Origin: Blastocystis sp. Blastoise
Taxonomy: Eukaryota; Protista; Bigyra: Opalinata
Direction of reading: 5' to 3'
NCBI GenBank assembly: GCA_039096225.1
Contig: JBBPEB010000007.1
Location: forward strand, 682,001-746,000
DNA: 64,000 nt
Below the pieces are notes generated by a model that had not been told where the DNA came from, searched no databases, and saw only the letters and a list, made by a program, of their open reading frames with translations. This document shows positions 9,701 through 32,897 of this stretch, piece after piece. The position numbers were made by a program, and so were the translations under genes. The stretch's first letter is position 1. Every line of letters begins with the position of its first letter.

Positions 9701-12700
9701 AGCATAGAAATCATAAGAGAATGTTTGTCCATAAGAGGTAAAGAATTGTTGATATTCATGATCTAATAATGTCCAAGTAATGCCATTATCATTAGAACCT
9801 TCAATTCTCCAACTAGAAGGAGATCTTTGATTACAAGTATTACCATTAGTAATCTTATAATGATTAATAAATTCTTTACGATCATTATTAAAAGTATATT
9901 GATAAATAGCACCAACACATCGTGGACCACTAACAACCTGAGTATTCAAATTATTATCAAATAATTTATCAGTACTTTGAGAATCAGTCTTTTCAATATC
10001 AGACCAAGCAACACCATCAGATACTCTGTATTCACCAGAAGGAATAAAAGCAACAAAACAAGTGAAATCATTAGTAGTAGGAAGAGTTTCTTTCTTATGT
10101 ATTTCAATAGCTATAACATTAGTACCAACAACAAGAATAGGATTGATAACTATAAAAACAGAACTAATAAAAGAAGTACTGGATGTAAATTCAGTTGTAG
10201 CAGCAGTATTATAATTAACAGTACCTGTAGGCATATTAATTCTTCTAATTTCATGACCATTAAGATAAATAATCATACCAGCATAAGTACTAGCACTAAT
10301 ATCGATTCCAGCATAAGCAGCATCAACAGTAGCAAGAGTAAAAGTAGTTCTATAATATTGAGTATTACCAGTAGGAGCAGATAAAGATCCAGAAATACCA
10401 GTAGACCAAGAGTCATCAGAGAAAGAATCTGTATTCCAATCAGAAGGAGCTTCAATATCATCATTTAAGTATTTCCAAGCAGCACTAGTAGAAACAATTC
10501 TACCAATATTAAGAGTAACAGTCTTAGGAGATTCACCTATAGCAAGAGAACCAGAAACAAGAGCAGTTGTACTATCTTCAACAAATACAGAATAAGTACC
10601 TTCACCCCAACCATCATTCTTGCTATCCGATAAAACTAAAGTATAAATACCAGAAGCTCTACAATAAAAGAAATTTTGAGTAGAATAATCAACAGAAGTA
10701 GATCTCGAATCAATAGCAGTACCGGTAGAATCGTTAAGTGTCCAAGAAGCTTCATTAGCATAATTTTTAAAATAGAATGATAATTTGAATAAGTTATTTG
10801 GAAAACTACAATCAATTACAGAGAAAGTAATATCATAAGTTGAAGGATAACCTTGAAAAGTTTTAGCACTAACAGTATAAGTAGTAGGAGATTGAAGTTG
10901 AGTAGGAATACCATTGAAATAACCATTAGAAGAATCCATAGAAAGACCACTAGGAAGATCAGGAGAAATAGTGAAATCATAATAATATTCAGAAGAAACC
11001 AAAAGAGCAGGAACAGGAACATCTTTATAAGCAACAAGATTAGAAGGAGTGAGACTGAAAGCAGGAATAACAAGAGAATTAGCATCTTCAATTAAGAATT
11101 CCCATTCAGAAAAAGCATATCTATTTTCATCCATAATTACAGCAGCTTTTGTAACAGCAATCTTATAATTAGTATAAGCTAGATAATTACGATAAACTAT
11201 GAAACATTTTCTTTGTTGTCTTTCTTCCCAAGAAACATTAGATTGAGAAGTAATAGAAACCCAAGTAGTACCATCCATAGAACCATAAATAGTCCAATCA
11301 GCAGGATCATAATTAGGAGCATCACTATTGGAATAAATACAATATTTACTCATATAAATAGCTCTCTTATTATTAAATTCAACAGTAACCCATTGTTCGC
11401 TAATAGAATCATGATTAGGAGTAATCCAACTAGTATTGGGATTAGAATCGAAAAGATTAGCAGCAGCACCATCAGTGAAAGCACCACTAGAATCATAAGT
11501 ACCATCAGAAGAATTTTGAATGACATTAGAATCGCCAATAAGATGGACTATACCATCAAAATCAAGATAATAAGAGCCAATACCACGATTAACTAGACCA
11601 ATAGCTATAGTAGCACTATTACCATTAGAGAGTGCATTAATATAACCAGATACAGATCTCCATATGAAAGAAGAATCACCACCAGTAGCACCAGTATCAG
11701 CATTAATTTCACCAGCAGCAAGATTATATCTATAGACTTCATTACCATTAACATAAATAACACAACCATCTTTAGATTTAAAGAATAATTCCCAACCAAC
11801 CATATTAGTCTTAGAAGTAATAGTAAAAGTATTTCTAAGAAGAATAATATTTTGAGTAACAGAAACAAGAGGATCATAAGAAAATGGAAGCCAGTTTGTG
11901 TCAGAAAATGATATTGTTCTCCATAAAGTAGTACTAGAAGCACCTTGTTGATATTTCCAAGTATTAGATTTAGGAGCAAGATCAAGACGAGTATTAACAT
12001 AATAAGTAGCAGTATTACCAGCTAATAAATATAAACGAGCAATTCTATGTTCAGTAGTAAGATCATATTTTAATGAAACATCAAGATAAGCACCTTTTTC
12101 CCAGCCATTATTACCATCATCAAAAAGAACAAACTTCCAACGACCAGCAGGTTGACAAACAGTAGATTTTTGATTATCACCATCATTAACACCAGTAAGT
12201 GTAATAATTTGAGTATTATCTTCATTATAAATAACAACACGTTCATCTTTAGAAGTCGATTTATTAACTTTAGTAATAACTACTTGAGCCATAGTAGGTT
12301 GTTGACATACTATACTACTAATAGCCATAATAAAAGAAGTAGGAGCATTTGTAGCACCATCAATAGCACTAATAGTATAAGTTTTAGTGGTAATAGCAGT
12401 ATCTACATAACCAAAAATATCACCATTAACAGCATCAAGAAATAATCCAGTAGGTAATTCAGGAGTAATAGTAAAAGTATGAATACCACTAGAAATAGGA
12501 GAAACGGATATATATGCATAAGTATTGAAATCAAGAGTATTAGAAGGATATTGAAGACCAGGAGAAAGAAGAGCCTGAGTAGTAACAAAAGTACGAATTT
12601 CAGCTAATTGAGTATAACTGTTGCCATTATTATTTAATATATCAAATTTAATTTGATTGAAAGATTTTCTATTCGAAGGAATATTAAATACATAGCTAGT

Positions 12701-13980
12701 ACTTTTAGCAGCAAACATATTTTTAGTAATATGATCTAAGAGTATCCAAGTAGCTCCACCATCTTCAGAACCATAGAATTTCCATTCTCTAGGATCTCTT
12801 CCTGACTGAGTATTAGCAGAAGTAATTTGATAAGCATTAAACCAAGTCTTAGATCCATTAGGAAGAGCAATAGTAATAGTACCAGTGTTACCTGGGAAAT
12901 CATATTGAGATGAATCGGAATTATCAACAACATTACTACAAACATAATATGTATTATCACTTTCAACAGAACAAGTAGCAGTACCACCAGAAGTAACAGC
13001 TTCACCAGCTAAAATAATAAGAAAGATAATAATTAATATATTTGTTTATATATTATAAGACATATCATTGAAAAAAAATAGATTAATAAACAAAAAACAA
13101 ATATGAATATAATAATATATACTAGTAGAAGTAATAGTAGTTGCATAACCATCAAAGACATCATAAGTATTTAATTGAGAAGAATGAGAGTGAACTTCAA
13201 TAGCAATTGTAAAATCAGTACCTGATGTGATATAAGGAGACAGAGGAATGACAATTCTATATACATATAATAATAAATATATATATAATGGATATAAAAT
13301 ATAACATATATATTTACGTTTTCATTGCAATAAAAGTGTCCACAATTAAAGAACCAGTATTAGAATCCGTTACACTATATATAATAGATAATTATTATAT
13401 TTTATTATTATACATATTTTTAGATACAAATAGAACAAAAAATAATATATATTGTATATAAATAAGTTTATAAACAAAAAGACATACGTAGGTAAACCAA
13501 CACGAGAAGCTTCAATACCATTTATATATATAATAAAACCAGAATCTATCTGAAAACCAAAACGAAGAGCATAAGAAGCAGCATAAGAAATAGAAGAAGT
13601 ATATCTATAATAACGAGTAGTAGTAGAAACAGCAGGGAAAGAACCAGGAGCAAGAGGAGTCCAAGCAGCATCATCAAAATCCATTTGAGTCCAAGAAGTA
13701 CCAGTTTGAGCAATAGTAGAAGTCTTCCAAATAGTATCAGAAGTAAAAACAAGATTCACTATATAAAATAATACAAAAAAATATAATATACAAAATAAAA
13801 CAAAAAATATTATATATAATAAATCAAATAATAATAATAATATAATAATAAATACAAGTGAATTGTTGTAATTTAGGAACATTAGCAGAAGCTTCACCCC
13901 TATTGAGTATTGCAGTTAGGAAGTTAGTTTCACCATATTTAATATAAAGATAAGCACCACTAGACCAGCCATCTCCGTAA
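6704..13980 (-). CDS. Giant type-I membrane surface/adhesin-like protein, exons 3-7 (beta-sandwich/discoidin-like modules, He_PIG-like Ig repeats alternating with HormR-like Cys modules, SEA-like region, single TM)
   Basis: The 2004-aa ORF 6704-12718 extends in frame to 13008 and through four upstream exons (about 13123-13256, 13318-13374, 13488-13759, 13857-13980) with no stop. It contains LPDGLSFN..TG.I.G.PT repeats, C..W..T..G..A..PC...G.R.R.C...W..C modules, the TM IILIVVVVILVIVLVLIFVL and a basic cytoplasmic tail. Confidence 0.85.
6716..6805 (-). repeat. 30-bp tandem repeat (x3) encoding KPQIQEAKVE in the cytoplasmic tail
   Basis: Direct repeats of ggtttttc(t/a)actt(t)(t/a)gcttcttg(a/t)attt; the translation shows QEAKVEKP three times. 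Confidence 0.85.
7430..9250 (-). repeat. 420-bp (140-aa) tandem coding repeat, about 4.3 copies
   Basis: The anchor ttgaaggcatctttaatt recurs at 7741, 8161, 8581 and 9001, an exact 420-bp period. Confidence 0.92.
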
Positions 13981-14003
13981 CTAAAAATATTATACAATTA
14001 TAA

Positions 14004-14022
14004 CACTATTAGTCTTTTTTCA
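14004..14022 (+). repeat. Left terminal inverted repeat (CACTA...)
   Basis: CACTATTAGTCTTTTTTCA preceded by the TAA target duplication. Confidence 0.8.
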
Positions 14023-14929
14023 CGGGAGGAAAAAAGCGATACATGAGAAATTCCAACTAATTATTTTTCAGATTATTTAAGATATTATCATAGTTATCCC
14101 CTTGGGAAATAAAACAAACTTCTAACATTCTATTGAAGTAAGCAAAAAAATAATCCAATAATATTAAGAATATTCATAATGGGAGCCAATAAAATGTCCA
14201 AAATTTCTTATATAGAGCATTCTATTTATTCGAAAATAATTTTAGTGTTTCAATAAAAGTAATTATCTTTTTAATAATTATCAGTTTTTTTAAACATATT
14301 TATAACTTCTGTATATAATAGAAAACAAAACTCTTAATATTAATAGAATAGATAATGATAACAATTTAAATAATAAAAATATCGTAAATATATATTTAAT
14401 GAAGATATTTGTTTATAATTAATCATATAGATCATGAAGTACAGTTTTATGCCTATAAATAAATAATAATTAATTATAAAATAAATAGCAATTAATTATA
14501 AAAATAATATTTAAATTATAAAATACATTTTGTAATTTAATCCTTTCTTAATCCTATAAAAAAATATATAAATTAGTGAAAATAGTATTAATTCTAAATA
14601 TATACATACAAATATTTACCAATATAGTTGGTTGGACAGATATATTTAAGTCTAAATCATAATTAAGTATTAACTATAAAAGAAAAGAAAATTAGATTAC
14701 AAATATATAAATATATACAAACGTAAGTATAATTTTTAATAAAATAGTACAAACGAATAACCTATATATGATAGTAATTAATTATATTATAAAAAAGAAT
14801 ATAAGAAATATATTTACAATTATAATAATGTTTAGCAAAAATAATAATCACATCAACCATGATAGAGTCTTAACTATAAATTAAAATAATCAAAAACAAG
14901 GAATTAAAAACATACATACAGAGATAAAT

Positions 14930-15558
14930 ATGTGACACAAGAACGGCTACATCAGTCATCGTCCTATATAAGATCAAGAATTACTAAAGATACATAACGT
15001 TATTAATTCATACTGAATAAACATAAAATAAATATAAAATAAATATAACAATAAATAAAATGTATTCTAGAATAAATAAAAAGGTATGTTTTTAAATACA
15101 ACCTTTATTGTCAAATCATATTACTTACAATTAGTGACGAATATTGTTTTTGACTCTGTCATAACAGCTCGTCAGTTGAGATATTATGACGTGGTTGGTT
15201 TTATACTTATATGACTTATTATTAAAGGCTTCGTCATTCCTTATCCAATTAGAAATCTATAAATATAAGTAAATTTCACGGGGAATCATATAATATATGT
15301 GTATTTATATTAATAATATATATATATATATAGATAATCAAAAAGATATATATATAATATTTACCATGAATGATTCTTTAATCTTTGATATATCTTCTAT
15401 TATTTGATGATCTTTATCTTCTAAGAAAAATCCAAAAAATGAAACAAAATTACCATTATTTTTCTTATCATAAAATGCCTTTTTTATTATTCTTTTAATT
15501 GTATTAATATCCTTAATTTAGTTCTGCAAAAGTACGGTGTCTCACACACTTTAACCAT
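14930..15558 (-). pseudogene. Decayed spliced ORF just inside the left end of the element
   Basis: ATG at 15558 (MVKVCETPYFCRTKL), then frameshifted fragments KDINTIKRIIKKAFYDKKIM, EDKDHQIIEDISKIKESFM and ISNWIRNDEAFNNKSYKYKTNHVIISQLTSCYDRVK, bounded by GT/AG sites, with in-frame stops. Confidence 0.45.
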
Positions 15559-15559
15559 T

Positions 15560-18070
15560 ATTGACTTTGTTATTAGCTTTTATAAAATAAAAATAACATC
15601 ATAAAATCCGGAACACAATTCTGAAAATGACTGTTAAAGAAATTTTTCGAAAACTCTAAATTTCTGGCTAAAAAACGCAATAAACCATTTTCGCACAAAA
15701 TTTTAACCAAAATTATTGGATTATTTTTATTTTATCCAATATTTTTCATTTTTATAAAAACACTTATTTTTCGTTTTTCATTTTTTATTGTTTTCTTATT
15801 TTTTCTATATCTCTTCACATACTATATATTTATTTTTATAAAATTAACTTTTATTGACGGGTTGGTCTTATAAATAGTTTTGACGGGTAGATTTGTTTAT
15901 ATTTACAACTTGACAACATATCAATACACACATCACTAACTATAAACTCTAAAATGGTTTCAGTTGTCATGATAATGACCTCAACTACTCTGAAACAACA
16001 ATAATTCCTTTAAATAACGACAAAAGACAAACTGATATCCAACACATTCCTTCTTTATAAACTTATTTGAGCTTTAATGTATTTATTTAACTCTGTATCC
16101 GTCATAAATATGTTTTATATTTTAATAATATGTTTTAAAAGAGAAATATTTGTTTATAAAATTTTTTCATCTTTGATACCCAATTTTGTTATCATCAGAT
16201 CTCAGTCAATATTCAACATATAATAAAAATAATAACATATTTAGAAACTAGACAACCTAAATATCATCCGTTTTTTATATTTTTATTTAATATATAATAT
16301 TAACCGAGATATGTTAATTTATATTAAAAACATAAAATTGAAATTTTTCTAAAAATGGTATATTTTGTTATCATCAGATCTCAGTCAATATTTTATAAAA
16401 TAAAAAGGTTAAAGCTTATTTAGATATAGGACGACCTAAATGTCATCCGTTTTTGCCATTTTTTTAAAATATTAAAAAATGAAGTCACAGGAGACAATAG
16501 TTAAACTCAATAAAAAAATGACGTTCGAAAATTTTGTTAAAAATTTTTCATTTGTTTTTTGTTAATATTTTCATCATTAACAAGCATATTTGACATTTGA
16601 CACTATATTGAATCACTACATATCAAAATAAACATATTTTACAATTTTATTTTGTTTTTAAAAGACTTTGACAACAGATCACCAGACAATGTTAACTCAA
16701 TAAACTCTTAAAACGTTTTAATTAGTGTTTAGAATCATTTATGGACATTGAATGTGACTTATTTGAAAAAGTTAAGACAACATGTTGAACTGATACTGAC
16801 AATGTTTGTTTTAAAAAGTCATTTATGAGTCATTATGAGTTGTAAATGTTATAAATATGCTTAAAATAAATAAATTTGTTTTTAATTGTCTTTAATTAGT
16901 GAAATAAATCGTTTAAAAAAAGAAAACATTTTTGATACTATAGTTTATTTTGACAATTTCTCCATCAATATTAATTTTTAAAAAATAAATAAAACTTATC
17001 TATAAACTAGATAACCTATAGTTTATATATTTATAAAAATATTATCTAAATATAAAATAACTTTTGAGAAAAAAAATTATATATGCAAAACATAAAAAAA
17101 TTAATTTTTGAAAAAAGGGTATACTTTATCGTTTTAATTTCTCAGTCAATATTTAATTATTTTATATAATTTTAACAAATAAATATAGAGAATAAAATAT
17201 ATTAATTATATTATTTTTAATATTTGAAATTAATAAAAAAATGAGTTCAGTAGAGTCAATAGTGTAACATGTTAAAAAACTGAAAATTGAAAAATCATTT
17301 TTCTAAAAATTTTCCAAAAGTTGACAAATCAAATTCATATTTGACAATTAATTTTTACATTTTTGATAACTAGACCTTATATGTATTGCATTTCTTAAAA
17401 AATTAGTCAAAAATAAGTTAGACGAGTGTATATATATATAACATGTTGACTCATAATTTTGAAAAAAGTAGTTAAATATGTCCTAAACCACATATCAAAG
17501 CAATTCTATAAATATTATCACTTTATAATGAGTTTAAAGGGTAAAATAATTTTGAATTGTCTGTTTGACTGTCTTAAGTGAAGAGATTCAATACACTTTT
17601 TGTAAAAATGAGTATTAGAGTGTTTAATGTTTATAATAATGAAAGAATTGTTTGAAATAAAGGTGGTTATGTGTTTGACCAAAATGTTAAAATGAGTCTA
17701 TTTTTAAAAAATGGTTAGAATAAGAAAGTATTGAGTGTTTTTGGAGTATTTTATATTAAAATTTACAATAAATAAATAATTTAAGTTGTTCAAAAAAATA
17801 TTTTTTTAGAATTACAATAGTTAAGTCAAGAGATTCAAGTCACCTTTTATTAAAATAATAAATAGACCTATTATAGAATATAGAATATTAAAAATTAGTT
17901 TAATTAAACATGGTTGACTGTTTGATAGGAGTGTTAAAATGGGTAAAAAGATTTTAATTGTTTCTAAAACTGTATAATACGTTTTTATGTCACTAAATAC
18001 AAAATTATTATTGTTTAAAGAATGTTTTTTGTCTTTCAAAAGAACTCATTCTTTGTAATTGTGACTTTAA
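15560..18070. repeat. Non-coding diverged repeat array (about 179-bp direct repeats inside about 760-bp higher-order repeats), TTGAC/GTCAA-rich
   Basis: ttttgttatcatcagatctcagtcaatatt at ~16184 and ~16363, with degenerate copies near 16950 and 17135. aaaaatga.gt..cag.aga..caatagt at ~16475 and ~17237. No real ORF. Confidence 0.7.
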
Positions 18071-19037
18071 ACAAAAGAGATTCAAGTTACTTTTTATAAA
18101 TTAAAATACTAAATTAAATATATATGTATATTAATATAAAATTCGTTTTAACAAAAGTGGATATGTGTATTTAAAAACGTTAAAATCTTTTAGAGTTTTT
18201 TTATGATAACTTATTTGTTTTAGAAGCTATATTGTATGTATAATAGGTAAAGTTTCCAAAGTATTTAAATCTATTTAGTTATGAAATGGAATGTAATTTT
18301 TGGTTTATATTTAGTTTTTCGTTTCATTTAATGAAATGATTTTGATAACACTATAAAAATTGAATTAAATTTGAATTAATTAATTTTAAATAATGAAAAG
18401 ATAATTTCTCTATAAATATTCTCTTTTACTTAAAACGAATAGATTCTATTAATGATAAATATTAAAATAAGACTCTAATTTTTTTGTTTATTATATAAAG
18501 TAATAAATATCTTTTAATTATTAAGAGTACTTTTGTATTAATAATTCAAACTAAAATAAGTATAATAAAAGAAAAATTATAATATTTATCAAATAATATC
18601 AAGATATGATTACTATTTACATAATTAAACATTTATTAATTGAGAAAAGCTGTATAATAAAATTTCTAAAATATTTATATAATAGTATATATAAAAGGAA
18701 AGGATAAAATATAAAAAAACAAATAGATATCAAAATTATAATATTTTAAAAATAAAACAAAACAATATATGAAAAGAATATATAATGTTTTTTTTAGACA
18801 AGAGAATAAGCTATTTCTCACAATAATAATTATATAGACTAATTCAAATAAAACATAAATATTTAAAGGTAGGGTATAAGTGATAATAATATGTTTTAAA
18901 AGAAAAAGTATTTTATAATCATATTGATATTATTTAAAATACTAAATATTTATAAAACTAAATGAATTGATAAAATACAAAGAAAGTTATAAATGAAATA
19001 ACAAAGAAAAGTGAATTAATATTGAAAACTAAAAACT

Positions 19038-19138
19038 AAATAGAAATAGAAATAGAAATAGAAATAGAAATAGAAATAGAAATAGAAATAGAAATAGAAA
19101 TAGAAATAGAAATAGAAATAGAAATAGAAATAGAAATA
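19038..19138 (+). repeat. (AAATAG)n hexamer microsatellite, about 16 copies
   Basis: Directly visible perfect array. Confidence 0.95.
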
Positions 19139-19451
19139 AGATCAAAAATAAAACACAAGAGTTAATTAATTATCATTGATAAACAATAAATATATATAAT
19201 CAATAATAAAAATGGCTAAAAAGAATATTAAAAAAAAAAGAAATTATACTCAAAAACATATAGAATGTTAAGTAAGAATTATCAATATGTATGAATTAAA
19301 TTATTTAAAATACTAAATTGAAAATTAAGATTAGAAGATAACAATTAAAAGCAATTGAAATAATATTTTATAGAATATGAAATAGTTTTAATCCTAAAAA
19401 AAAATAAAAACAGAAATGAATAACAAAAACATAAGAATAAATATTCATTTT

Positions 19452-20079
19452 TTAAAATTCAATGTAAGATATAACAATTGAGAGATAATAATTATCTAAA
19501 CTCAAGCGTAGGCTGGCGTAGCCAGTCGTGAAACGCTTGTAATCATTTAATTTACTGATTTCACTAAATACTGATAGATATTCTTTAATTATTTGAAAAA
19601 TTAATATGAACAATTGACTTCCTTCATCGACAACTAAACATTCATTTTCTTTCTTAAAGATAATTCTTGCTTGTATTAATTCTTCATTATTTAAAACGTA
19701 TGGAATAAACCTTAAACGTGACTATAATATTAAAAGTGTATCATAATGGTATAAATTATTATAATTACTTTTACGACCTTTGTTGATGACATAATTGATG
19801 TTACTTTAATACCTTTTTTTAGAGCCTCTCGTCGAAAAAAAATTTCCATATCATAGTCCAGTTTCTTATATTGTTCTATAATTATTATTAATTATGAGAA
19901 ATATATATATATATACTACTTTGTGTTGTATCAAGAAGTGACAAATAGAATTCACGAAATTGATTCAGAAATTCTACTTTGAATTTTTTTATTCTAATGA
20001 TTTCATCGGTAGATAACAATTCAACCTCAATTTTTCTATTTATTATAACAAAATAATATTTATAATACTTTCTAGGCAT
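19452..20079 (-). CDS. Small 3-exon hypothetical protein (about 167 aa) carried inside the transposon
   Basis: Exons 20079-19917, 19875-19805 and 19721-19452 splice at GT-AG sites into an uninterrupted frame: MPRKYYKYYF...KQYKKLDYDMEIFFRREALKKGIK/SRLRFIPYVLNNEELIQ...IEF*. Confidence 0.55.
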
Positions 20080-21500
20080 TTTTAAATGAAAATAAAAAAT
20101 ATATGATTTTATGGTTTTCTTTTATTCATTCTCTGTAAATTCTATAAAAAGTAAAAAATATTTCTTTGTGTTTACATATAAATAAAAAAAACAAATACAA
20201 TAATATTAATCATAAAAATGTTATCAGCTAGTTATGTTAAGAAAACATATTTATATATCAAATTTAGTGATTGATACAATTTATAAGAAATCTGTTTTTC
20301 TTTAGCTAACAATCAACTAAAAACAAAAACCAGAATGAACTAGAATACCTTATATTATATATATATATATTTAAGAAGATTATAATGTAAATATATTGAT
20401 CAATTTAGTAAAACAAAAGAATATTTAAAATATAATATAAAGTTTGCATCAAGTATTGTTAATCTATATATATAATAAATAATTTATATAATATATTCAT
20501 TATATATGTATATATATATATACACTCTTAGAATAATTATTGTATCTGCCAAATATAAATAAGACTAGTTAATATAATCTAAAACCATTAATTAGAAGTT
20601 GCTATCTATTTCTAAAAGTATTTCGAATAAATGAAATGATAGGAGAATATATAAAGAAAAGAAGAGTGCCGATTATATAGAAAATAGGTCAGGACTATTC
20701 TTATAGAAGAAACCACTTATATAGAAAAGAGTACTTTAATATCTCATATAGTTTATATAGATAAACAAAGAAATAATATCTTCACTTTAGCAATTATTAA
20801 TAATCGATTAAGTAAATAAACAAATCATAATCATTTGTACTTATTCTTCCTTTTAAAAGCAATAAAGTAATTCTATTTAAATCATTCAAAATATGAGCAT
20901 ATTTCTATCAAAAATGCATAACTATATGAAATACCTAAATATGTATTAATTAACATGTTAATAAAAGTAATAATTGACAATAATACAGTTGACTTTATTA
21001 AGATTGACATTCACATAATTTTAATAAAATTTAATTCAACTGGGCACTCCAATTTTGTCTCCAATTGCAACATATTTCAAATATATTATACATAAATAGA
21101 TGTGATCTCTATTTCTAAATAGCAAACCATAATATTAAATAGTATTTACAAAATAGAAAGAATCTTCAATTATTTTTCTATTCATGGTTATCCATATTTT
21201 TTTACAAGAATATATACATTTTCCATGAATCTGATGTTTTCATTTAAAACTTGAAGTAATTTCATATTATATTGAAATAACAACATAAAGTGAAGAATTC
21301 ATTGTATTTCCAGGTGCTATTTGAAATTACAAAGGTATCTAATAAAATAATTATTTTTTTGTAAAATTGATTATACAAAATCATATATCATATTGATTAT
21401 TTCTATTCACTTTCAATAATATTATTAAGAATAAATATACCTATTCCAATCTGTATTTTACATGATATATATAGAATGACACACCGATTATATTCAAATA

Positions 21501-21706
21501 ATGGCTTCCCGAATAAAAGAAAAAAATAAAGAAACAAAACATCATGAAGAAAGAAATATAGAAGTCAATGATAATTCAGTGGACATATCACACGATGATG
21601 TAATAGAACCTATAGTTTCAAATGAAGGATCTAATATAACTGGAAATGATCCTTTAATCTCAAAAATCATTAATATGATTTTGAAAGATAACGTATTTTT
21701 ATTATA

Positions 21707-21753
<47 letters not shown>

Positions 21754-22968
21754 TACATATATATATATATAGATATATATATATAGATACATATATATAT
21801 ATATAGATATATATATATAGATACATATATATAGATACATATATATAGATATCAAATGAGAATCATGGTTCTAATGGAGTAAATGAGAAGATAGAGAAGA
21901 TTATATTTGAATTTTGGATTTCATTAAGAATTAGTATGGAAAAAATTAAGAATATATATAAATTTGTAAATGATATAATTGAAATAATAAATCCATCAAT
22001 AAATAAATTTGATATTCCTCTTTATGGTCAACAGGTAGTACAAAAATTAATAAGATTAGTACCTAATAAAGTTTCTACTCTTAACATATATGTATCAGAT
22101 TGTTGTAATACTATTCTTGGATATAATAAAGGTAAAGAATCAATAGAGATAGAAAAAAGGACTTGTTCAAATAGTATTTGTGAGGTGAAATCAAGTATGA
22201 CAATAATATTATATTTTTAATATATAAGATATGCATTATTGTTTATTTAGGTAGAAGAATAACAATTGTACCTATAATACCAAGGATAAGACAAATGCTA
22301 AAATCAAAAACAATGATCCAAGATATTTCTTTTTATAAAAAAGAAGATATATTATCAATAATTAATTCAGATCAAAATAGTATTCCAGATGATATTCCTC
22401 TTTTTTTAAGAAGTATTACATATAAGAAGTATATTGAAAGATTACTAGAAAATGGCGATATTCTCTTAGCCTTTAGTTTTACTTGTGATGGGATATCAGT
22501 ATTTTCGCATTCTTCTTCAGATTATAATAGATCCTCCTTTCCTCTATTAATAAAGCTATTAAACTATAATATTAAAAGAAATTATGATAAGAGATCTTTT
22601 TGGACTTATGCAATTACTTCAGAGTATCATAGTTGGCCTATAATGTCAATAATAGTTGAAGAGTTTAAACAACTTTCAAAGGGGATAGAAATGGATATAA
22701 TGATAAACAACACTATACAAAAAAGAAAGGTTGTTGGAATATTATTAAATGTATATGGAGACTATGCCGCTATGACGGCAATTGGTTGTTTCAGTGGACC
22801 ATCTTCTATTTTCCCATGTAGATGTTGCGAATTAGAAATAGGAAGAACAGACGAACATTTTCATGAAGGAATTAAATGCTCATTTGGAAGTGTATCTAAT
22901 CTTATTGACAAAAGTAATGATAATAATCAAATTAATGAAATAAAATTTCCAATAATTATCAAGAATCC

Positions 22969-23014
<46 letters not shown>

Positions 23015-25237
23015 TAATTATATTAGTATATTTTTTATAAATATATATTATTATGTTTATATTATATTACTTTTATCATTATTTCAATATTCCATTGATT
23101 ATCCATAATAGTATATATATTATTCTTTATTCTTCTTTATACTGATATTATTATTAGTACTACTATTATCCTTAGTATCTGTATTAATATCATATGTAGT
23201 TCAATATCTTATAGTTATTACTATTCATATAATTTTTCTTATATCGCCTCTATATTTTAAATAGTTGGTATAGTATACCATTATTGATATTATAATTATT
23301 TAAATTCATATTTACTTAATATTCATGATCCATAATAAAAACATTTTTATATATATTTCTAGTATTAGTTTCTTCTATATTTATATCTATTTTTGTTTCA
23401 TTTATATACATTTTTATATAATAGTAAATGTTACTATATATACATATTATATAGAAGATACATCTTGTCTTCTACCAAGAATAATTAAATCAATACCACT
23501 GGAATATATATATAATGATGCGTTTGAAATGAAGCAATATAATCAAAGGACAATGGATACTATAAGAACTCAAAGAAGTCTATGTGAAGAGAACGAATCA
23601 TATATGGGTGTCAAAAAGAAATGTTGCCCATTTGAAAGTATTCCCTTATTTGATATTTCAGCTAGTTTCAGCATTGATACAATGCACCTATTTAATAATA
23701 TTGTAACTCTATTTCTATCCTTATTATTTGGTTTTAACACTGAGCATTACTCTTCACTAGTTTCAAAAGATAGTAATACTGAAGGAGTTGAAGTAGTTAA
23801 TAAATATTGTTTGTCTAAAGAAAACATGAATATTTTGAATACAAGAATAATCAATCTTAATACTTTATATAATAAATATGAATATGAGTTTAGATTAATC
23901 ATGAATAAAAAGAAAATATCATGTGTTTCTTCGCATACAAGAATATTCTTCTTTTCAGTTATATTACCTCTTATTACTCATGATTTCAATATAGAAGATT
24001 CTTCAATTATTCTCCTTATCGATCCTTTAGCTACAATAATTAGAGAAGTTGAATATGATAAATTATTTATGTTAAATAACAATATAGAAATACTACGAAA
24101 ACAATGTTATCTTTTTAATTTCTTATGTGAAGTTTTATTGCCTCGAGAGATTATCAATTCACAAATACATCTACTTCTTCATTTAGCTGATTCTATACAA
24201 TCAGTAGGGTCATATTTATATGGCTGTACATATGAATCAGAACGTTTTTACTCCAAAATAAAGCGGATAACATTTGGAAGAAGATGTTTTAATGAATCAA
24301 GTATAAAAAAACTTATACAAGAAGAAGCTTGTTTTATTAATGATTTTTCTAATATAAATAATAGAAATGTTTCTCCACCTATGTTAGCTGATTTAGAGAA
24401 TAATGTTGAAACCAATATCATTCATGATAATGAATATCAATCCCATAAACAATTTAAAACAATTAGATATGCTGAGAATAACTTTATTCATTCTGTAAAG
24501 GGTTTAAGAGAGTCAGAGGAGAAAGATCTTAATGAACAAGAAATATATTATCTTATAAAAGAATTGATTTTACTTAATGATACTACCATAAATCAACTAT
24601 TATTTAAAGATATTAATATGGATTTGCTCACAAATAATATAAATTTACTAGATCATAATTCATCTTATAATAAACTAAAAGAAAACTTGAAATTATTATC
24701 CATTTTTTATTATTCCGAAATTCTTATCAATGAATCATTAGTGTTTACAAGTACAGAGGAAGACGAAGGAATAGAGTCACTAGATAACTCCTATATTGCA
24801 TATAATGCAACAGATATATCAAATGTGAATACAATTCATCTAATAAAGTCATTATATTATATTCAAATAAATGATATAGTATTTATAAGAAAACATGAAT
24901 ACCCTGTTTCACAACCATCAGTTAGCAGATTATATTATATAATAAATAATTCAAATGATTCTGTTCCAATAGAATCTAAATATGGATGTCCATTCTTAAT
25001 AATCAATAAGATTATTCCTGATAATATTATTATTTCAGATATACATATAAAAAGGAAGGGTGAAGATGAGGATGAAGAATATAATCAAGTATATAATTAT
25101 TATATATATTTTTCTATATTAAATTATTATAGGAAGATATACATTCTAAGAATTCAAATAGAAGAGCATACAATTCAAGCGATATTCAAACTAATACTGT
25201 TTTTACTACACGATACTTAAAATCTTTATGGTCTTAA
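21501..25237 (+). CDS. CACTA/EnSpm TnpD-like (Transposase_21/tnp2-type) DDE transposase, 5 exons, 998 aa, apparently intact
   Basis: Exons 21501-21692, 21849-22194, 22251-22970, 23455-25088 and 25133-25237 total 2997 nt. Motifs: [19 protein letters not shown] (D1), [13 protein letters not shown]....PCRCC (D2 plus CxxC), [39 protein letters not shown] (E). Confidence 0.88.
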
Positions 25238-27243
25238 AAATACATTTTCCCATATATAATAATTATTTTATTTATTTAATTTTATTTATTAATTTATATT
25301 AAAAATGATGGATTTCATTTAATTCTTATTAATTCTTATTTTGTTTCATTCGTATTTAATATATTAAGATACAATGGTATACATATATATTTATTTATCT
25401 TATTTATTTTTTATATATATTATTTAGTATATTAAGATATAACGGTATACATATATATTTATTTATCTTATTTATTTTTATATATATTATCATCTTTCAT
25501 ATATTTCCATATTGTTTATATAAATAACATCCTAAAAGATTTGATACAAAGATCATGGTTTATCATTAGGAGATAATATTCATAATAATCTTTTAATTAT
25601 ATTTTAAAATATGTATGATGTTAAAGTTATATATAAATGACATTTTAAGACACTTTGAAATACAATATTCTTCATAATATATTATTTTTAATTAGATAAT
25701 TGGTATCCATTTTATTTAATTCAACTATTCTAATTAGTTTGATAGTTATAATATCAAACTATTCAATAACATGCAATAATCATAGTAATATGAATCAATG
25801 AAGATTTATGTAAAGATAAACATTGATATTTCTCATTTTAATAAAATATACTCTAGATATTTTTATTTAAAGATATTTGCAAAAAATCTTTATCTTTAAG
25901 GCTTAAAAGAAATAATTCATATTGATTCGAATAAGGTTTCAACGAAAAATTGAATTAAAATAAAAGCATAATATATATAACTAATAATAGGAAAAAGATA
26001 TACATTTCTTTTTTTATCTATAAATAAGATCATAACAGAACATAATAAATATGGAGAATGTATAATTAATGATCAAATTGTTTTTATAAGTAATCATAAC
26101 TGTAAAAATAAAGAGTCACAGTAGTATAATAGAAAGTATAGTATAATTAAATTCTATTAATTTTAATCATAAATAATTAATGTTATTCTTTACAAAAGAA
26201 AAATTAATCAGAATAGTATTAAATAATAAAGAAATTACGTATGAAGTAGAACATTAATGGCTGATGATATGATAAACCAAATAATAATACGAAATATCTG
26301 TATTAAGTATAAGTATCATTAGTCAATTTAATAATATGACATAAGAATTCTGATTCTTTATTGAATACTAAAAAGAAATTTAAATAATTAAAACAAAAAT
26401 TAATGTTATATAAAACCATTAAAAAGAAGAAGAACTAAATAGAAAGAATATCCATTTCTGATTACTAACTACATAATTAGAAACTTGATGATTCAATTAT
26501 AAATAGAAGATTGAGATTTAAATTCAAGGTCAAATCAAGGAAAAGAAATATATTAGTTATAAATAATCAAGAAGTGTTTCAATAATGCAAATTATTTTCT
26601 TTCAAATAAATTAATTTATATTCAGAATAAAGTGCACCTAGTAATACCAGTTATGATAAATAATACTAAGAAATATAATGATAGGTTAAATAATTATTTT
26701 CACTTCGCTAAATTGATAACAGTATCAAAAATAGATTCTTATATAATAGAATTCGAGAAGAGATTACATAATATATTCTGATAAATACTAATAATATATG
26801 ATATATATTTCGAATTATGAAACAATTTTATTATAATTAAAATAAAGTAATGTGTTCAAAATGAAAAATATTAAGTAAGTTGAAAATGATATCTTCTACA
26901 CACTATTTGTTATTACAAAATATAATTTCTAATTTCCATATTCAATGTGTGAGAATCATATCGTTTTAAACAGTATCTTTAATAACAATTATTATTATTA
27001 TTATTATCTATTCATTTTAATCAGATAATGATATAGTTTAACATTTTCTATATATAAAAAAATGATTAATTTTATTGATAAGATTAATGACTGTTTTCTT
27101 ATAATATAATTCATTTGAAATTAAGAATACAAACATAAAGAAATAGAACATATGCCATTTTTGATTTATATATTCAAAAAGAAAGAAATTATAATCATAG
27201 TTAAATGTATGCAATAATCCTCACTATAGTAATTAATAGAATC

Positions 27244-27283
<40 letters not shown>

Positions 27284-27588
27284 TATTTAAAGATATGAAA
27301 CTAATTAGAAAACAAAGAAACTTTATAATAATGATTCCATGAAAGAGATTATATAAAACTTCAAACATAAAGGAAGTATCTTCTTTTATAAATGATTGTG
27401 CCGAAAAATGCTTTATATTCTCCTTGAACATATTTAGTTTTCAATTTTATATTCAATTAAAAATAATTAAATAATTCTTATTAAAAACTCTTACATTTAT
27501 CAAATTCAAAGTAGAATATTTCTTATACGTTAACTACTTTCCGAAAAAAAAGTAATCAATAAAACTTAATAATATCATGATCAACAAG

Positions 27589-27630
<42 letters not shown>

Positions 27631-30419
27631 ATCAAAGTCTTATTTAACAACAAGAATAGAAGAAGATAATAAAAGAGACTTATTATAAGGAGTTTTAAGC
27701 AGAAAAAGGAATTACTTAAGAAGATAATAATTAGCATTTGGAAATAAAAGTAATCGAATGAAAATAAATTGTAGTAAAATGGAATTAAGTTGCTTAACAA
27801 TATATTAATAGCATGAGATTTATCATTTTAATACAACATAATATAATTATTAATATAATTATTAGGTGATACGTATGTAATATAATATAAGTGTTTCTCG
27901 AATTTCTAAAAATAGAATCATTATTTACATATAGTATTAAAATTATATGATAATTTCATTAATCAATGAAATCAATATATGGTGATGTACAAATTAAAGT
28001 ATAAATAATTACATAATAGTAAGAGTATTAAGAAAACTATAAACAGTATAATCATAGTAATCAATGGAAACATGTAGTATGAATATGAATAAAATGAGGA
28101 TAACTATCATTATTACTAGTAGTATTATTGGTAGAAAATGTATAATTACATGAATAAGAAGAAATATGTATAATTTTGTTAGGTTACATTAATTAAAAAT
28201 ATAAGGATGTGTTTTTAATAATCTATATATATATTAACTTTTAAATAATATGGAATACTCCATTTTGTAGTAACATTTGTAATTCGAATATATGTTACAT
28301 TGACTCAGATGTAAGGGAAATATAAATAATAAAAAGTTTAGGTAAGGAAGAAATAATATTGATGAAACATAATAATATGATAATTAATAAAATTAATAGA
28401 ATTTTGATATCATTATTTTTATGTGAATCGTTATTAGTTGATTCAATACTCTCAGGGGATAAACAATAGTTAGATAATAGAAATATGAAGATTCATGTAA
28501 TCAAGATTCACCACAACAGTAGAATAAAAACTAGGATACTTATATGGTTATAATAATGACATAAAGTAATAATAATGGAAAATAATAATAATATGAAATG
28601 TTTATAATATCCTGGAGTGATCATGACCAATATCATTAAAAAAATATGAACATAGACATAATAAGTATACATTAATATGAGTAATTGTAACATTCTATAA
28701 TATAGAAGGAGTATGAATATCAGTAGTACTATTAAAACAAGAAAATACTCAGTTTTGAGCCATTATTTGTATGTAACATAATTTGATAAAAGTATAATAG
28801 TATCAGGAATATGAGTAGTAGTCACAGGAGGAATAAAGATAGTATATATATATAATATTTGCATTATAGCTATTATCATTTCTATTTCATAATTAATATA
28901 ATAGGAATAGTAAGAGTATTATAATGAAATTTTAGTTCATAACATTTAATTCTAAATACAGGAATAGAGCAAAAGTAATTTTTGAATAAATATCATTAAT
29001 AGCAATATTATTATTATATAACTCAATATTTGGAAGATAAGTAGCTTTAAAGCACTCCTATTAATAAATGAATAATATGAGCCTAGTATTTTTTTTACAT
29101 AAAAATTAGTATAATAGAATTATTAATAAGTTCGATAATATCTATTTCATTATATATAAAATATAAATAAGTATATGTAGATCTTTATGATAATGTTCAG
29201 TAGGATTCATTATAATAACGGAAAGACTAATAGCATAAGAAGTATTATAACAATAAAATGGATATATTTTGAATCTAGGATAGACATCTTGAATATTATT
29301 GAGATATTTAAGAAAATAAAAATAGTAGCAAAAATATATTTACATTATAATAGACTAATTCTGTAAATCAAATATTAATTATGAATAAATATTTATATAA
29401 AGACTGAAATGAAAATATGTGTTTTCTAACGTATAAATAGAAAAAGAATAAGAGACATAAATGCTGATTTTAAATTCTTAGAAATAATATTTCTTTTTTC
29501 AGAAAGATAAATGTATAGTAACAAGTAAATAGTTTAGAAGGTAGAATTGAGTTATCAATGTAGAAAGGCTACTCTTACTAAATAGAATCAGTATATATAT
29601 TTATAGAAGCACTTAAATGAGTATATAAAAATTAAAGGATTATGAGTAGATGAAGAAAAAATTCAAAATATATATTGATAATTCTAAACAAAGGAAGAGT
29701 ATAATTGAATTTTATAGTAATTCAATTCTTTTATTTATTTAAAAAGAATATAAGAATATGAAGATAGATATATGAATAGAATATAGGAGACAAAAAAAAT
29801 GTCAGAAGAAGATAAATTAATTCCAAATATAGATTTGTCTAATGGAAAAAGAGGTAGTAGTAATACAGGAATAAAAGTAACCAAAATATATATAACAATG
29901 AACATGGTAATACATTAATTCAAATCTTAATATGTAATATATATTTATCCAATAAGTTCGTTGAAAAGAATTATATTACAATTAGAAGCTTCAAAGAAAT
30001 TAATTTAGCTTTCAAATAGTCTACATAAAATGTAGTGACATAAACATACAAAAATATATATTCTGATTAGTAATTCTAGTTTTATATGATATTTTCTAAT
30101 CAAGAAGTACAAGAAGAAATACTATAAAATATATCTCATAGTATATAAATGCTAAAATTTTCAACATTAAATAATTATCAAACAAACTATTATATGAATA
30201 ATTAGGTAATAAATATTTATATACCTTTTTTTAATCTCTAAAATAGAAATTTTGACATTATAAAGAATTATCTGTTCTCTATCTTTATATAAAATAATAA
30301 ATAAATAAATAAAAAAAATATATATATATATAACATAATAATAAGAATAAAATAAAATAAAAATATAAATAATCAAGTTCTTCTCTATAATAATAATAAT
30401 TATATATATATATATATAC

Positions 30420-31360
30420 ATATTTAAGAGGATGATGAACTTTTATACAAATAAATAATGTTTCATTCACTAATGATTCTTTTACAATTTTTCTTTCAAG
30501 AACACATTGCTTCTTAGCATATTCATGATTATTTGCAGTAATAATGTTCATAATAGCACAAACATAAGGTACCAATAATAAAAAGGTGCCTATATATATA
30601 TAGTCATTCTTATTCTTTTATTATTATTATAAAGAAAACAAATATGAATCAATAATAAATGGCTACTTATAAGTTGATAATATAGAATAATAAAACAAAA
30701 TCATTACATAAAATAGAATACAGAATTCAATATAATATAGTAAATATATAATAGAATAATAATATACAGTATCAGATATAATAATAGAAAGAACATTATA
30801 ACTATTATATAGTTAAATAATCGTAGGATAATTACAATTCAATTGTTGAGTTAATTCCCTTTCTTTACTCTTTAAATCATTATGTTGTATGTTCACTTCA
30901 ATCTTTTTCATAGCTTCTTCTAACCTCTTCTTATATAATTATGATTCACTGATTCTTATACATTTTTTATACATTCATTTAATGGCTAGAGATAATAATA
31001 ATTATTGTTATAAATAATAATAATAATATATAAACCTATATTTTTCTTTAAAAGAATATAACGATCAACTGGATTCATAAATGGAGGCAAAAAATTAATA
31101 CTCTAAATAATATATAAAATAAGAAGCATAAAATGAATAAGAATAAACAATAATAAAAATATTATTTATATACGAAAAGTGAAAAATGGAAAAGTACTAA
31201 TGCAAAAAATAAAAATATATATAATATATTTATATACCTTCAACAGTGCCTGAGTTGTTGTTTGAAAGAAGGTAGACAAGAGTAACCAAAAACCTAAATG
31301 AATTAAAAATGAATCTAAAAAAATACCTCATAAGAAATAAGTCAACATGTGTATATCACA
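30420..31360 (-). pseudogene. Decayed multi-exon gene inside the element (cargo or accessory ORF)
   Basis: GT/AG-bounded exon fragments MRFLVTLVYLLSNNNSGTVE, SINFLPPFMNPVDRYILLKK, KRLEEAMKKIEVNIQHNDLKSKERELTQQLN and VPYVCAIMNIITANNHEYAKKQCVLERK, with stops and frameshifts. Confidence 0.5.
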
Positions 31361-32501
31361 AACCATCTTAAAAAAGAATACAAAGACTACCAGGTAGAAA
31401 GAGGGAATCCAGAATGCAAAATCTTAAAGAATTACGAAAAAATATATAAAATATTTTATAATTAAATACTGAAATAGCATGCCCTTATCATAGAAACATA
31501 CATAAACCTTTTAATAAGTTCTAGTTCTAAATAGAGACGTCAAATAAATAATTAATGCGAATTCACGTTTAAATTCAAATTTATTAGTCAAAAAAGAAAA
31601 ATTACATAAAAATTCAGTTTTATTGTTCTTTTGTTTTTTTTAGATATTTTAATAGTATTATAACCTGTGACAAGTCACATACTACACTATTATTAAATAC
31701 TCTTGAATCCCACTAATCATAACTTATAAACAAACTACTCATTTTCTTTGACTCTCTGATCTGTTTTTTTAAACGTTTTAAAACTACTGTTTCTAACTTT
31801 AAATACCTGTTTATTACGGAATCATTTCAAAATACAACAAATAGAAGGACTTTTCTTTGATTCTGTGAAAAACTAGTTTTTTTATAACCTCTGATATGTT
31901 TTTTTGATGAGGAACTTTTAGTAATAATAAAATCAAAAGAAAAAACGTTTCTAAAACCTTCATGTCCTCTGATATATATTAAAATATAAATAGACTCAGT
32001 TTTGAACAAAAAAAATATTCCCGTAATTATTTTAAAAATTCAAAACTCTGGTCTAACTGCCCATGATACAAATAGGCTCGGTTCAATTTTTCAGTGTAAA
32101 AAAAATATAATTTTTTGACTTTTTGGCTGAATTTTGGTTTTGACCCATAGAGGTCTTTTTATTCATTTTTACGCATACTTGTGACTCTAAGAAGGTCTAA
32201 ACTTTAAACAGAGCAACAAAAGGTTTTAAAATATTGACCCCATTATTTGTCGAAATTGCGACTTAAAACAAAATAAAAACGTTTTGGATATTATGTGACC
32301 TTATAAAACAAGAAAATATTGTCAATTCTTTGATAACATATGCTAAACATGAATTTTAGAGTCTAATAAAAAGTCAACTGAAAAAAAGTGTCAAAATTTT
32401 GTCAAAATTCACGATTTTTGCCTAAGTCTCTAAAACTACTCTTTTTTTAGTGGCTGAACAAATTCTGAACTGAAACTAGCCAATAATATATTTTAAAAAA
32501 A

Positions 32502-32520
32502 TGAAACCAGAATAACAGTG
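32502..32520 (-). repeat. Right terminal inverted repeat (...CAGTG)
   Basis: tgaaaccagaataacagtg followed by the TAA target duplication. Confidence 0.8.
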
Positions 32521-32584
32521 TAATGATTACTTTTTTATTGGAGTAATTAAATAAAATAATTTTTAAATATTATCAATTACATAC

Positions 32585-32897
32585 TTATCGTACATAGCAA
32601 GAGTATAAACGGCATTTAATTGAAGACAAACAACATATTCTTTATACCCATTGTTATCGGCATTCGTACCAGCTCCTTCATGGATAAGAACTCCAGTTGT
32701 ATCAGTTCCTTTAAATATCTTCTACGATTCTTCATAAGCATAATTCTTAAATTCTTTTCGAAGCATAAAAAGCGCACTAGGATAAGTACACAGCGATTGG
32801 ACTATATTTATTATGATTTAAAAGCAATAATAAATATTACAAATATACCTAAGGATATCAATCCTAAAATAATAAAAAGAGCAACGAATTGTCTCAT
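32585..32897 (-). pseudogene. Exons 1-2 of the giant surface-protein gene (signal peptide and first domain) with an in-frame TAG
   Basis: Exon 1 (32897-32849) is MRQFVALFIILGLISL. Exon 2 (32801-32585) is VQSLCTYPSALFMLRKEFKNYAYEES*KIFKGTD...VCLQLNAVYTLAMYD, with TAG at 32722-32724 where the paralogous internal domain has W (FKNYANEASWTL). The phase-2 donor GTATGT matches the acceptor at 13981. Confidence 0.85.

Follow-up and report, generated by a model that had tools for sequence, protein, structure and literature searches.

A large insertion with CACTA ends splits a host gene

The genome of Blastocystis sp. 'Blastoise', a stramenopile of the tortoise gut, carries on contig C29 a gene for a large extracellular-type protein whose first exons are separated from the remainder by an 18,517-bp transposon. 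We analysed this locus within a 64,000-nucleotide (nt) stretch of the contig (the window), in which the transposon spans positions 14004–32520. The window has a G+C content of about 22% and standard stop codons are used, as is evident from a frame that stays open for 2,113 codons when read with the standard code. The host gene lies on the minus strand and encodes a He_PIG/discoidin-domain protein of about 2,300 amino acids (aa), one of at least 20 paralogous proteins 1,900–2,600 aa in length. A preliminary account drawn from the letters alone (the sequence-only reading) had described a cargo-carrying CACTA transposon hidden inside an 84-bp intron of a giant surface-protein gene; all of its coordinates hold after the boundaries and host exons were re-read from the sequence. 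The features at the junctions, including letters shared with sister copies on contigs C15 and C13, are listed below.

6707–13980, minus strand: remainder of the host gene, beginning at exon 3 (YGDGW...); encodes He_PIG, F5/8 type C and HRM domains
13981–14000, minus strand: 3' remnant of the host intron, ending TTTTTAG (the 5' remnant is 32524–32584)
14001–14003, no strand: left copy of the target-site duplication, TAA; paralog introns have a single TTA here (gene strand)
14004–14022, plus strand: left terminal inverted repeat (TIR), CACTATTAGTCTTTTTTCA, with the same letters in the C15 and C13 copies
32502–32520, minus strand: right TIR, which reads CACTGTTATTCTGGTTTCA inward from the end
32521–32523, no strand: right copy of the target-site duplication, TAA
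32585–32897, minus strand: orphaned 5' host exons, with the ATG at 32897, a signal peptide MRQFVALFIILGLISL and a later exon that ends ...YTLAMYD

The left boundary reads ...ATTA TAA/CACTATTAGTCTTTTTTCA (14001–14022) and the right boundary TGAAACCAGAATAACAGTG/TAA (32502–32523), which confirms the CACTA/CACTG termini and TAA duplication recorded previously. Both termini start with 5'-CACT(A/G) in inverted orientation (CACTATTAG... and ...AACAGTG), as in elements of the CACTA/Mirage/Chapaev (CMC) superfamily, and the left and right TIRs pair at 15 of 19 positions, again as had been noted. The TAA/TAA flanks fall within the 2–4 bp duplication of such elements (3 bp for CACTA proper). All related families in the genome have A(C/T)AGTG at their ends, and in one related element family the left TIR is CACTGTTATTCTGTTTTCA.

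At the window's base composition a bare match between 3-bp flanks has a chance of about 3.5% by our estimate, and the stronger evidence that an insertion took place comes from ten paralogs that retain the homologous intron. In the window, the upstream exon ends with the codons for YTLAMYD followed by AA at 32585, and the donor GTATGT comes next; the acceptor TTTTTAG extends to 13981 and the following exon starts T-TAC-GGA-GAT-GGC-TGG. The join between 32585 and 13981 is in phase and yields YTLAMYD-N-YGDGW, and the intron measures 84 nt once the element and one TAA are taken out, with the insertion point 61 nt into it. The motif YTLVLSDSKNDGW also occurs at residue 1049 of the annotated protein. 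The in-phase join and the internally repeated motif both stand as first described. Ten paralog loci encode both exon peptides, with an intron of 84–100 nt between them. At the insertion point itself several paralogs have ...AATCATTATAATT..., with TTA in one copy only. The 3' part of several paralog introns is AATAATCATTATAATTATATA, and the window has AGTAATCA-TTA-(element)-TTA-TAATTGTATA on the gene strand. Without the element and one TTA, the window therefore regains both the intron length of the family (84 nt) and its local sequence.

Sister copies and an empty site define the ends

The element is represented by the window copy, the C15 and C13 copies and a partial copy on contig C23, that is, three full copies and one partial copy that are 97–98% identical. 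The C15 copy (C15:1019904-1034350) is 14.4 kb long and represents the base form of the element, the C13 copy (C13:1061368-1084326) is 23.0 kb and the left part of the C23 copy is missing. The termini of the C15 and C13 copies are identical to those of the window copy, and their flanks are ACT/GCT and TAA/TAT, respectively. The two 400-bp flanks of the C15 copy adjoin at 100% identity in contig C8 (2194431-2194829 and 2194828-2195227) and likewise in contig C17. The flank alignments overlap by 2 bases and the next base is mismatched, which identifies a 3-bp target, ACT in the orientation of the element. These empty sites thus show that the termini are exact and that a 3-bp duplication characterizes the family. 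Evidence of mobility comes from copies that share their ends and occupy different places in the genome, together with the empty sites on C8 and C17. The sequence-only reading had proposed looking for further copies with other triplets and for unoccupied sites, including paralogs with an intron of about 84 nt, and both searches succeeded.

The C15 copy itself sits in another CACTA-like element (C15:1034351-1040146), which belongs to a family with an 831-aa transposase that is also found on C8, C17 and contig C2. Members of the superfamily thus nest in one another.

The transposase is homologous to TNP2-type enzymes

The element encodes a transposase on its plus strand.

21476–25234, plus strand: transposase gene with several exons and main open frames at 22295–23017 and 23325–25220; TNP2-like, with a DDE catalytic core

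These open reading frames (ORFs), together with upstream exons, map onto a 972-aa annotated model of the C13 sister copy. Pfam scans of single sequences gave DUF4218 at 19–22 bits, below the cut-off of 27, at the same relative place in seven of the eight family members. We built a profile from eight Blastocystis members and searched it against 1.84 billion proteins, which returned about 45 remote proteins after the genome's own relatives. Among the 42 remote proteins that were scanned, 32 carry Transposase_21 (tnp2), 14 carry DUF4218 and 13 carry DUF1258. Alignment of the profile by hhalign to 28 remote non-Blastocystis proteins gave a probability of 99.9% and an E value of 1.3e-32 over 469 columns, with the motifs sTDGf, GD.PA, PCR.C, D.MH, H.L.HL and ER in register. 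Profile comparison links the transposase, with its DDE core and cysteine-rich motif, to TNP2/Transposase_21 proteins, in agreement with the EnSpm-type transposase named in the initial description. The TNP2-type profile match, the CACT(A/G) ends and the 3-bp duplication together place the element in the CMC superfamily. All close relatives of the transposase among about 15 billion proteins come from the 'Blastoise' genome, which contains at least 75 transposase-like stretches of several families in 33.3 Mb and 34 contigs. A search for contigs that encode the sister-copy transposase returned none.

We regard it as very probable that the window holds an autonomous-type CMC cut-and-paste transposon, one of four young copies, an assessment that extends to the whole account given here, including the probable chimeric gene described below. 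The transposase would cut at the CACT ends.

Internal organization of the element

In the base form, the order from left to right is the TIR, a minus-strand left arm, a second gene (ORF2) on the minus strand, a divergent promoter region, the plus-strand transposase, AT-rich DNA of about 5.7 kb and a right arm of about 1.5 kb. The corresponding features of the window copy are as follows.

15287–15505, minus strand: 3' half of the ORF2 exon, residues 61–133 of the 135-aa exon of the C15 copy
15521–19539, plus strand: nested insertion of an unrelated dispersed repeat, 4.0 kb, boundaries within 1–2 nt
19536–20122, minus strand: 5' part of ORF2, with the other piece of the split exon at 19536–19721 and further open segments at about 19733–20122
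25235–30990, no strand: AT-rich DNA with no convincing ORF, present essentially only in the four family copies
30992–32520, no strand: right arm, conserved and non-coding, with its core at 31981–32520

The 135-codon exon of ORF2 is conserved in about 45 places on the strand opposite to the transposase, and wherever both genes were mapped ORF2 lies 2–5 kb upstream of the transposase in divergent orientation. An uninterrupted form of the exon was also seen. In the window copy the nested repeat splits the exon into 15287–15505 and 19536–19721, so this copy is probably defective for ORF2.

The nested repeat lacks any long ORF, includes an (AAATAG)n array and ends at its 3' side in a hairpin, ...GGCTGGCGTAGCCAGTCGTGAAACGCTTGTA. 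At least 36 copies occur in the genome at 88–93% identity. It is missing from the C15 copy of the transposon and is found at two other positions in the C13 copy. The repeat entered the ORF2 exon of the window copy as a later, secondary insertion. Many of its genomic copies are truncated on the 3' side, and one on the 5' side; an apparent duplication of about 9–11 bp accompanies one insertion, and there is none at another.

Outside the family, the AT-rich segment at 25235–30990 matches short simple-sequence stretches and one 75%-identical segment on contig C19. A 66-nt match at 27239–27304 was set aside as a (TA)n microsatellite.

The right arm is conserved at 68–90% nucleotide identity in at least 35 elements, and its core at 31981–32520 is 77–90% identical across families whose transposases are only 34–57% identical. 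In translated comparisons (tblastx) there are stops in all six frames, conservation is equal in all of them and indels of 1 nt occur, which together indicate that the arm is non-coding. The pentamer GTCAA/TTGAC occurs seven times in the last 540 bp of the arm, with 0.9 occurrences expected. The right arm is probably a shared cis-acting or RNA-level module. By analogy with the subterminal repeats and TnpA of En/Spm, the right arm, and perhaps ORF2, could serve in end recognition. No Rfam family was found in the element (gathering scores; E up to 5), and ARAGORN, with default and relaxed settings, found no tRNA. The relaxed settings gave one candidate, at 15625–15700, that was dismissed as not credible given its folding z of 0.34.

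The deposited host gene model begins inside the transposon

The left arm contains a series of short exons on the minus strand.

14527–15420, minus strand: left-arm train of mini-exons with six GT-AG introns, from a 424-nt spliced contig of run X1; intron ends checked
About 15365–15420, 15129–15256, 14920–14963, 14818–14873, 14719–14761, 14610–14673 and 14527–14553, minus strand: the left-arm mini-exons

The X1 contig is spliced by way of six canonical GT-AG introns from about 15412 to 14526. It carries the bases of the window copy at 15140 and 15146 and is thus a transcript of this copy. The stop codon of ORF2 forms at the junction of the exons at 15129 and 14963, so the later left-arm exons are non-coding for the element.

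The deposited model of the host gene, WA158_007152 (P0072, 2,329 aa), is 98% identical to the large ORF of the window and begins on these exons. Its start, MTDVAVLVSHIYL..., maps to 14959–14527 and then to 13979, and up to exon 3 the N-terminal sequence is MTDVAVLVSHIYLFKTLSWLFVCTILLKIILTFLILNYDLDLNISVQPTILVNICMIKKGLNYKI-YGDGW.... In particular, the first 64 residues lie on five mini-exons (14959–14920, about 14873–14853, 14761–14719, 14673–14605 and 14553–14527), which are followed by host exon 3 at 13980. The last aligned exon of the X1 contig ends at the donor used by the deposited model; two donors differ between contig and model, which indicates alternative splicing. The models of the genome paper were chosen for strictly RNA-seq-supported introns (PMC12129017). 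On the strength of this model, the host gene is annotated, and is probably expressed, as a transposon-host chimera without its real signal peptide. The genuine 5' exons, 18.6 kb upstream, form part of no model that we saw. The start of the deposited model inside the element bears out the expectation of the sequence-only reading that automated annotation would mishandle this gene. One base of a left-arm mini-exon, at window position 14635, is missing relative to the C15 and C13 copies, and the long chimeric frame of WA158_007152 runs through that exon.

The orphaned exons contain an in-frame TAG (32722–32724, minus strand) in the upstream exon at a position that is Trp in the paralogs (EESWKIF). 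In the shared frame, the paralogs read ...YEESWKIFQGTDTTG... and the window reads ...YEES*KIFKGTDTTG.... These exons appear to be decaying, which would account for the stop at the conserved Trp codon, and loss of the gene's own signal peptide is the most likely outcome. Hydrophobicity along P0072 peaks in the N-terminus contributed by the transposon, MTDVAV...LSWLFVCTILLKIILTFLI. The location of the element within the intron, as first described, is upheld, and the stop codon in the orphaned exon makes a working host gene doubtful. No C-terminal membrane anchor was found in the host protein, so 'secreted or extracellular' describes it more safely than the term surface protein.

Many contigs from runs X1 and X2, one of which is a 2025 gut metatranscriptome, align to the large host exon at 90–95% identity and high depth. 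They derive from expressed paralogs or related Blastocystis strains and indicate that the protein family is well expressed.

Alternative explanations

The large size of the element, about 10 kb of which is neither transposase nor TIR, suits a gene-capturing ('Pack-CACTA'-like) element that owes its extra length to host-derived cargo, and the sequence-only reading had called it cargo-carrying, multi-gene and unusually large. The evidence does not support these descriptions. No captured host sequence was found in the element. Of the extra length, 4.0 kb is the nested repeat, which the C15 copy lacks and which occurs at least 36 times in its own right; the segment at 25235–30990 is essentially confined to the four family copies and matched no gene outside them; ORF2 is a gene of the element superfamily itself; and the remaining ORFs have no Pfam domains. 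The extra length is therefore explained by the nested repeat, ORF2, a family-specific spacer and the conserved arm, and the base element of 14.4 kb is of ordinary size for an autonomous CACTA. We consider host-derived cargo very unlikely. A PIF/Harbinger-type element, with two genes and a 3-bp duplication that is often TAA/TTA, would fit the two-gene layout, the TAA flanks in the window and one side of the C13 copy. The transposase profile, however, matches TNP2/Transposase_21 and DUF4218 proteins and not PIF-type DDE enzymes, the termini are CACTA/CACTG, and the C15 target is ACT and not TWA, so this assignment has next to nothing to commend it. We give equally little credence to a repeat-induced misjoin on contig C29. 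Repeat copies that are 97–98% identical can mislead assemblers, but a misjoin would not place the two halves of one paralog-verified intron around the element with a clean 3-bp duplication, and the window copy has its own single-nucleotide polymorphisms and a unique nested insertion.

A more serious contender concerns the host gene, in which the transposon could be a harmless intronic passenger, as the sequence-only reading implied: the gene would be transcribed from its own promoter, an intron of 18.6 kb would be removed and the normal signal peptide would be joined to exon 3. Both splice sites, GTATGT at 32584 and TTTTTAG at 13981, have stayed intact and in phase, the downstream frame is open for more than 2,200 codons, and an alternative acceptor at 32709/32708 could bypass the stop in frame. 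Nevertheless, exon 2 carries the TAG at 32722–32724 where all inspected paralogs have Trp, the paralog introns at this place are 84–100 nt, and the deposited RNA-seq-based model lacks the 5' exons at 32585–32897. No contig with a 32585-to-13980 junction was found, though coverage is too thin to exclude one. On balance we judge normal splicing across the element unlikely, and favour the account of a cut-and-paste CMC transposon whose left-arm exons now probably form the start of the host transcript.

Several observations weigh against this account. The triplets of the sister copies are imperfect (ACT/GCT and TAA/TAT), and the empty site accounts for the first only. In the single-sequence scan of the transposase, no Pfam transposase family reached its gathering score. 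Comparison of the left and right arms revealed no similarity beyond the 19-bp TIR; subterminal repeats of the En/Spm type on both ends were not found, and the enrichment of GTCAA/TTGAC is confined to the right 540 bp. ORF2 gave no domain or lead in Pfam (to E 1) or in an ESM Atlas feature search. With regard to the chimera, the join between the donor at 14527 and the acceptor at 13981 rests on the deposited model; the contigs recovered from reads across 11001–15500 are short, none of them covers 13701–14450, and the join itself is unseen in them.

Comparison with other CACTA elements

The transposon resembles En/Spm of maize and other plants in its CACTA/CACTG termini and 3-bp duplication, in a DDE transposase that is homologous by profile to TNP2/TnpD (Transposase_21 and DUF4218), and in that it exceeds 10 kb and encodes a second gene. 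A further likeness is the insertion into a gene, with element exons in the host transcript according to the deposited model. In maize dSpm alleles, element sequences are spliced into host transcripts. The differences are equally clear. The second gene of the Blastocystis element lies on the opposite strand in divergent orientation, whereas the products of En/Spm arise by alternative splicing of one transcript, and ORF2 has no detectable similarity to TnpA. The Blastocystis TIR is 19 bp long and imperfect (15 of 19 positions), only one of the two ends has a conserved arm of 0.5–1.5 kb, divergence keeps the transposase below the Pfam cut-offs, and the element resides in a stramenopile gut protist.

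SmTRC1 of Schistosoma mansoni (PMC1636069), Mirage and Chapaev show that the CMC superfamily reaches beyond plants. In common with these non-plant elements, some of the remote transposase matches carry DUF1258; the close relatives of the Blastocystis family are in the 'Blastoise' genome only. The element is like Pack-type CACTA elements in its large internal regions without transposase coding and differs from them in that no captured host fragment was detected.

One extension of these differences is possible, though we hold it doubtful: the left arm may be an evolved 'read-out' module, which with the conserved right arm would define a CMC lineage with cis-acting or RNA-level features not described for En/Spm. 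The non-coding mini-exons that follow ORF2 would then end in a donor that has no partner within the element and takes the next host acceptor, such that insertion into a gene would give rise to a transposon-promoted chimeric mRNA. At the present locus the hydrophobic transposon-derived N-terminus could replace the lost signal peptide.

Blastocystis transposons are almost undescribed. Genomes of tortoise isolates were reported to consist of 5.6–7.5% transposable elements, as total percentages without family detail (PMC12129017, Genome Res 2025), and our literature search found no paper linking Blastocystis and CACTA elements. The family described here is thus a CACTA/CMC transposon in a lineage where such elements are undescribed. 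The locus provides an exactly delimited and apparently recently active CMC/CACTA family with its transposase, an accessory gene and an end region that are both conserved, and two kinds of empty-site proof at one transposon family. It also exposes a concrete annotation error, as WA158_007152 begins on transposon exons, 18.6 kb downstream of the true signal-peptide exons, and it offers, from a gut protist, a natural example of a large secreted-protein family in which one gene has been rewired by a transposon insertion. The known working of CACTA elements is unchanged by the locus, and its value lies mainly in Blastocystis annotation and transposon biology.

The related families may also include larger structures. 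A 57-kb stretch of contig C3 (403672–460668) contains, in consistent order, a right end, a 57%-identical transposase (427251–429107), ORF2 (432602–432982) and a left end belonging to a related family. It is flanked by the differing triplets TTT and ATA, and may be one very large composite element or two elements.

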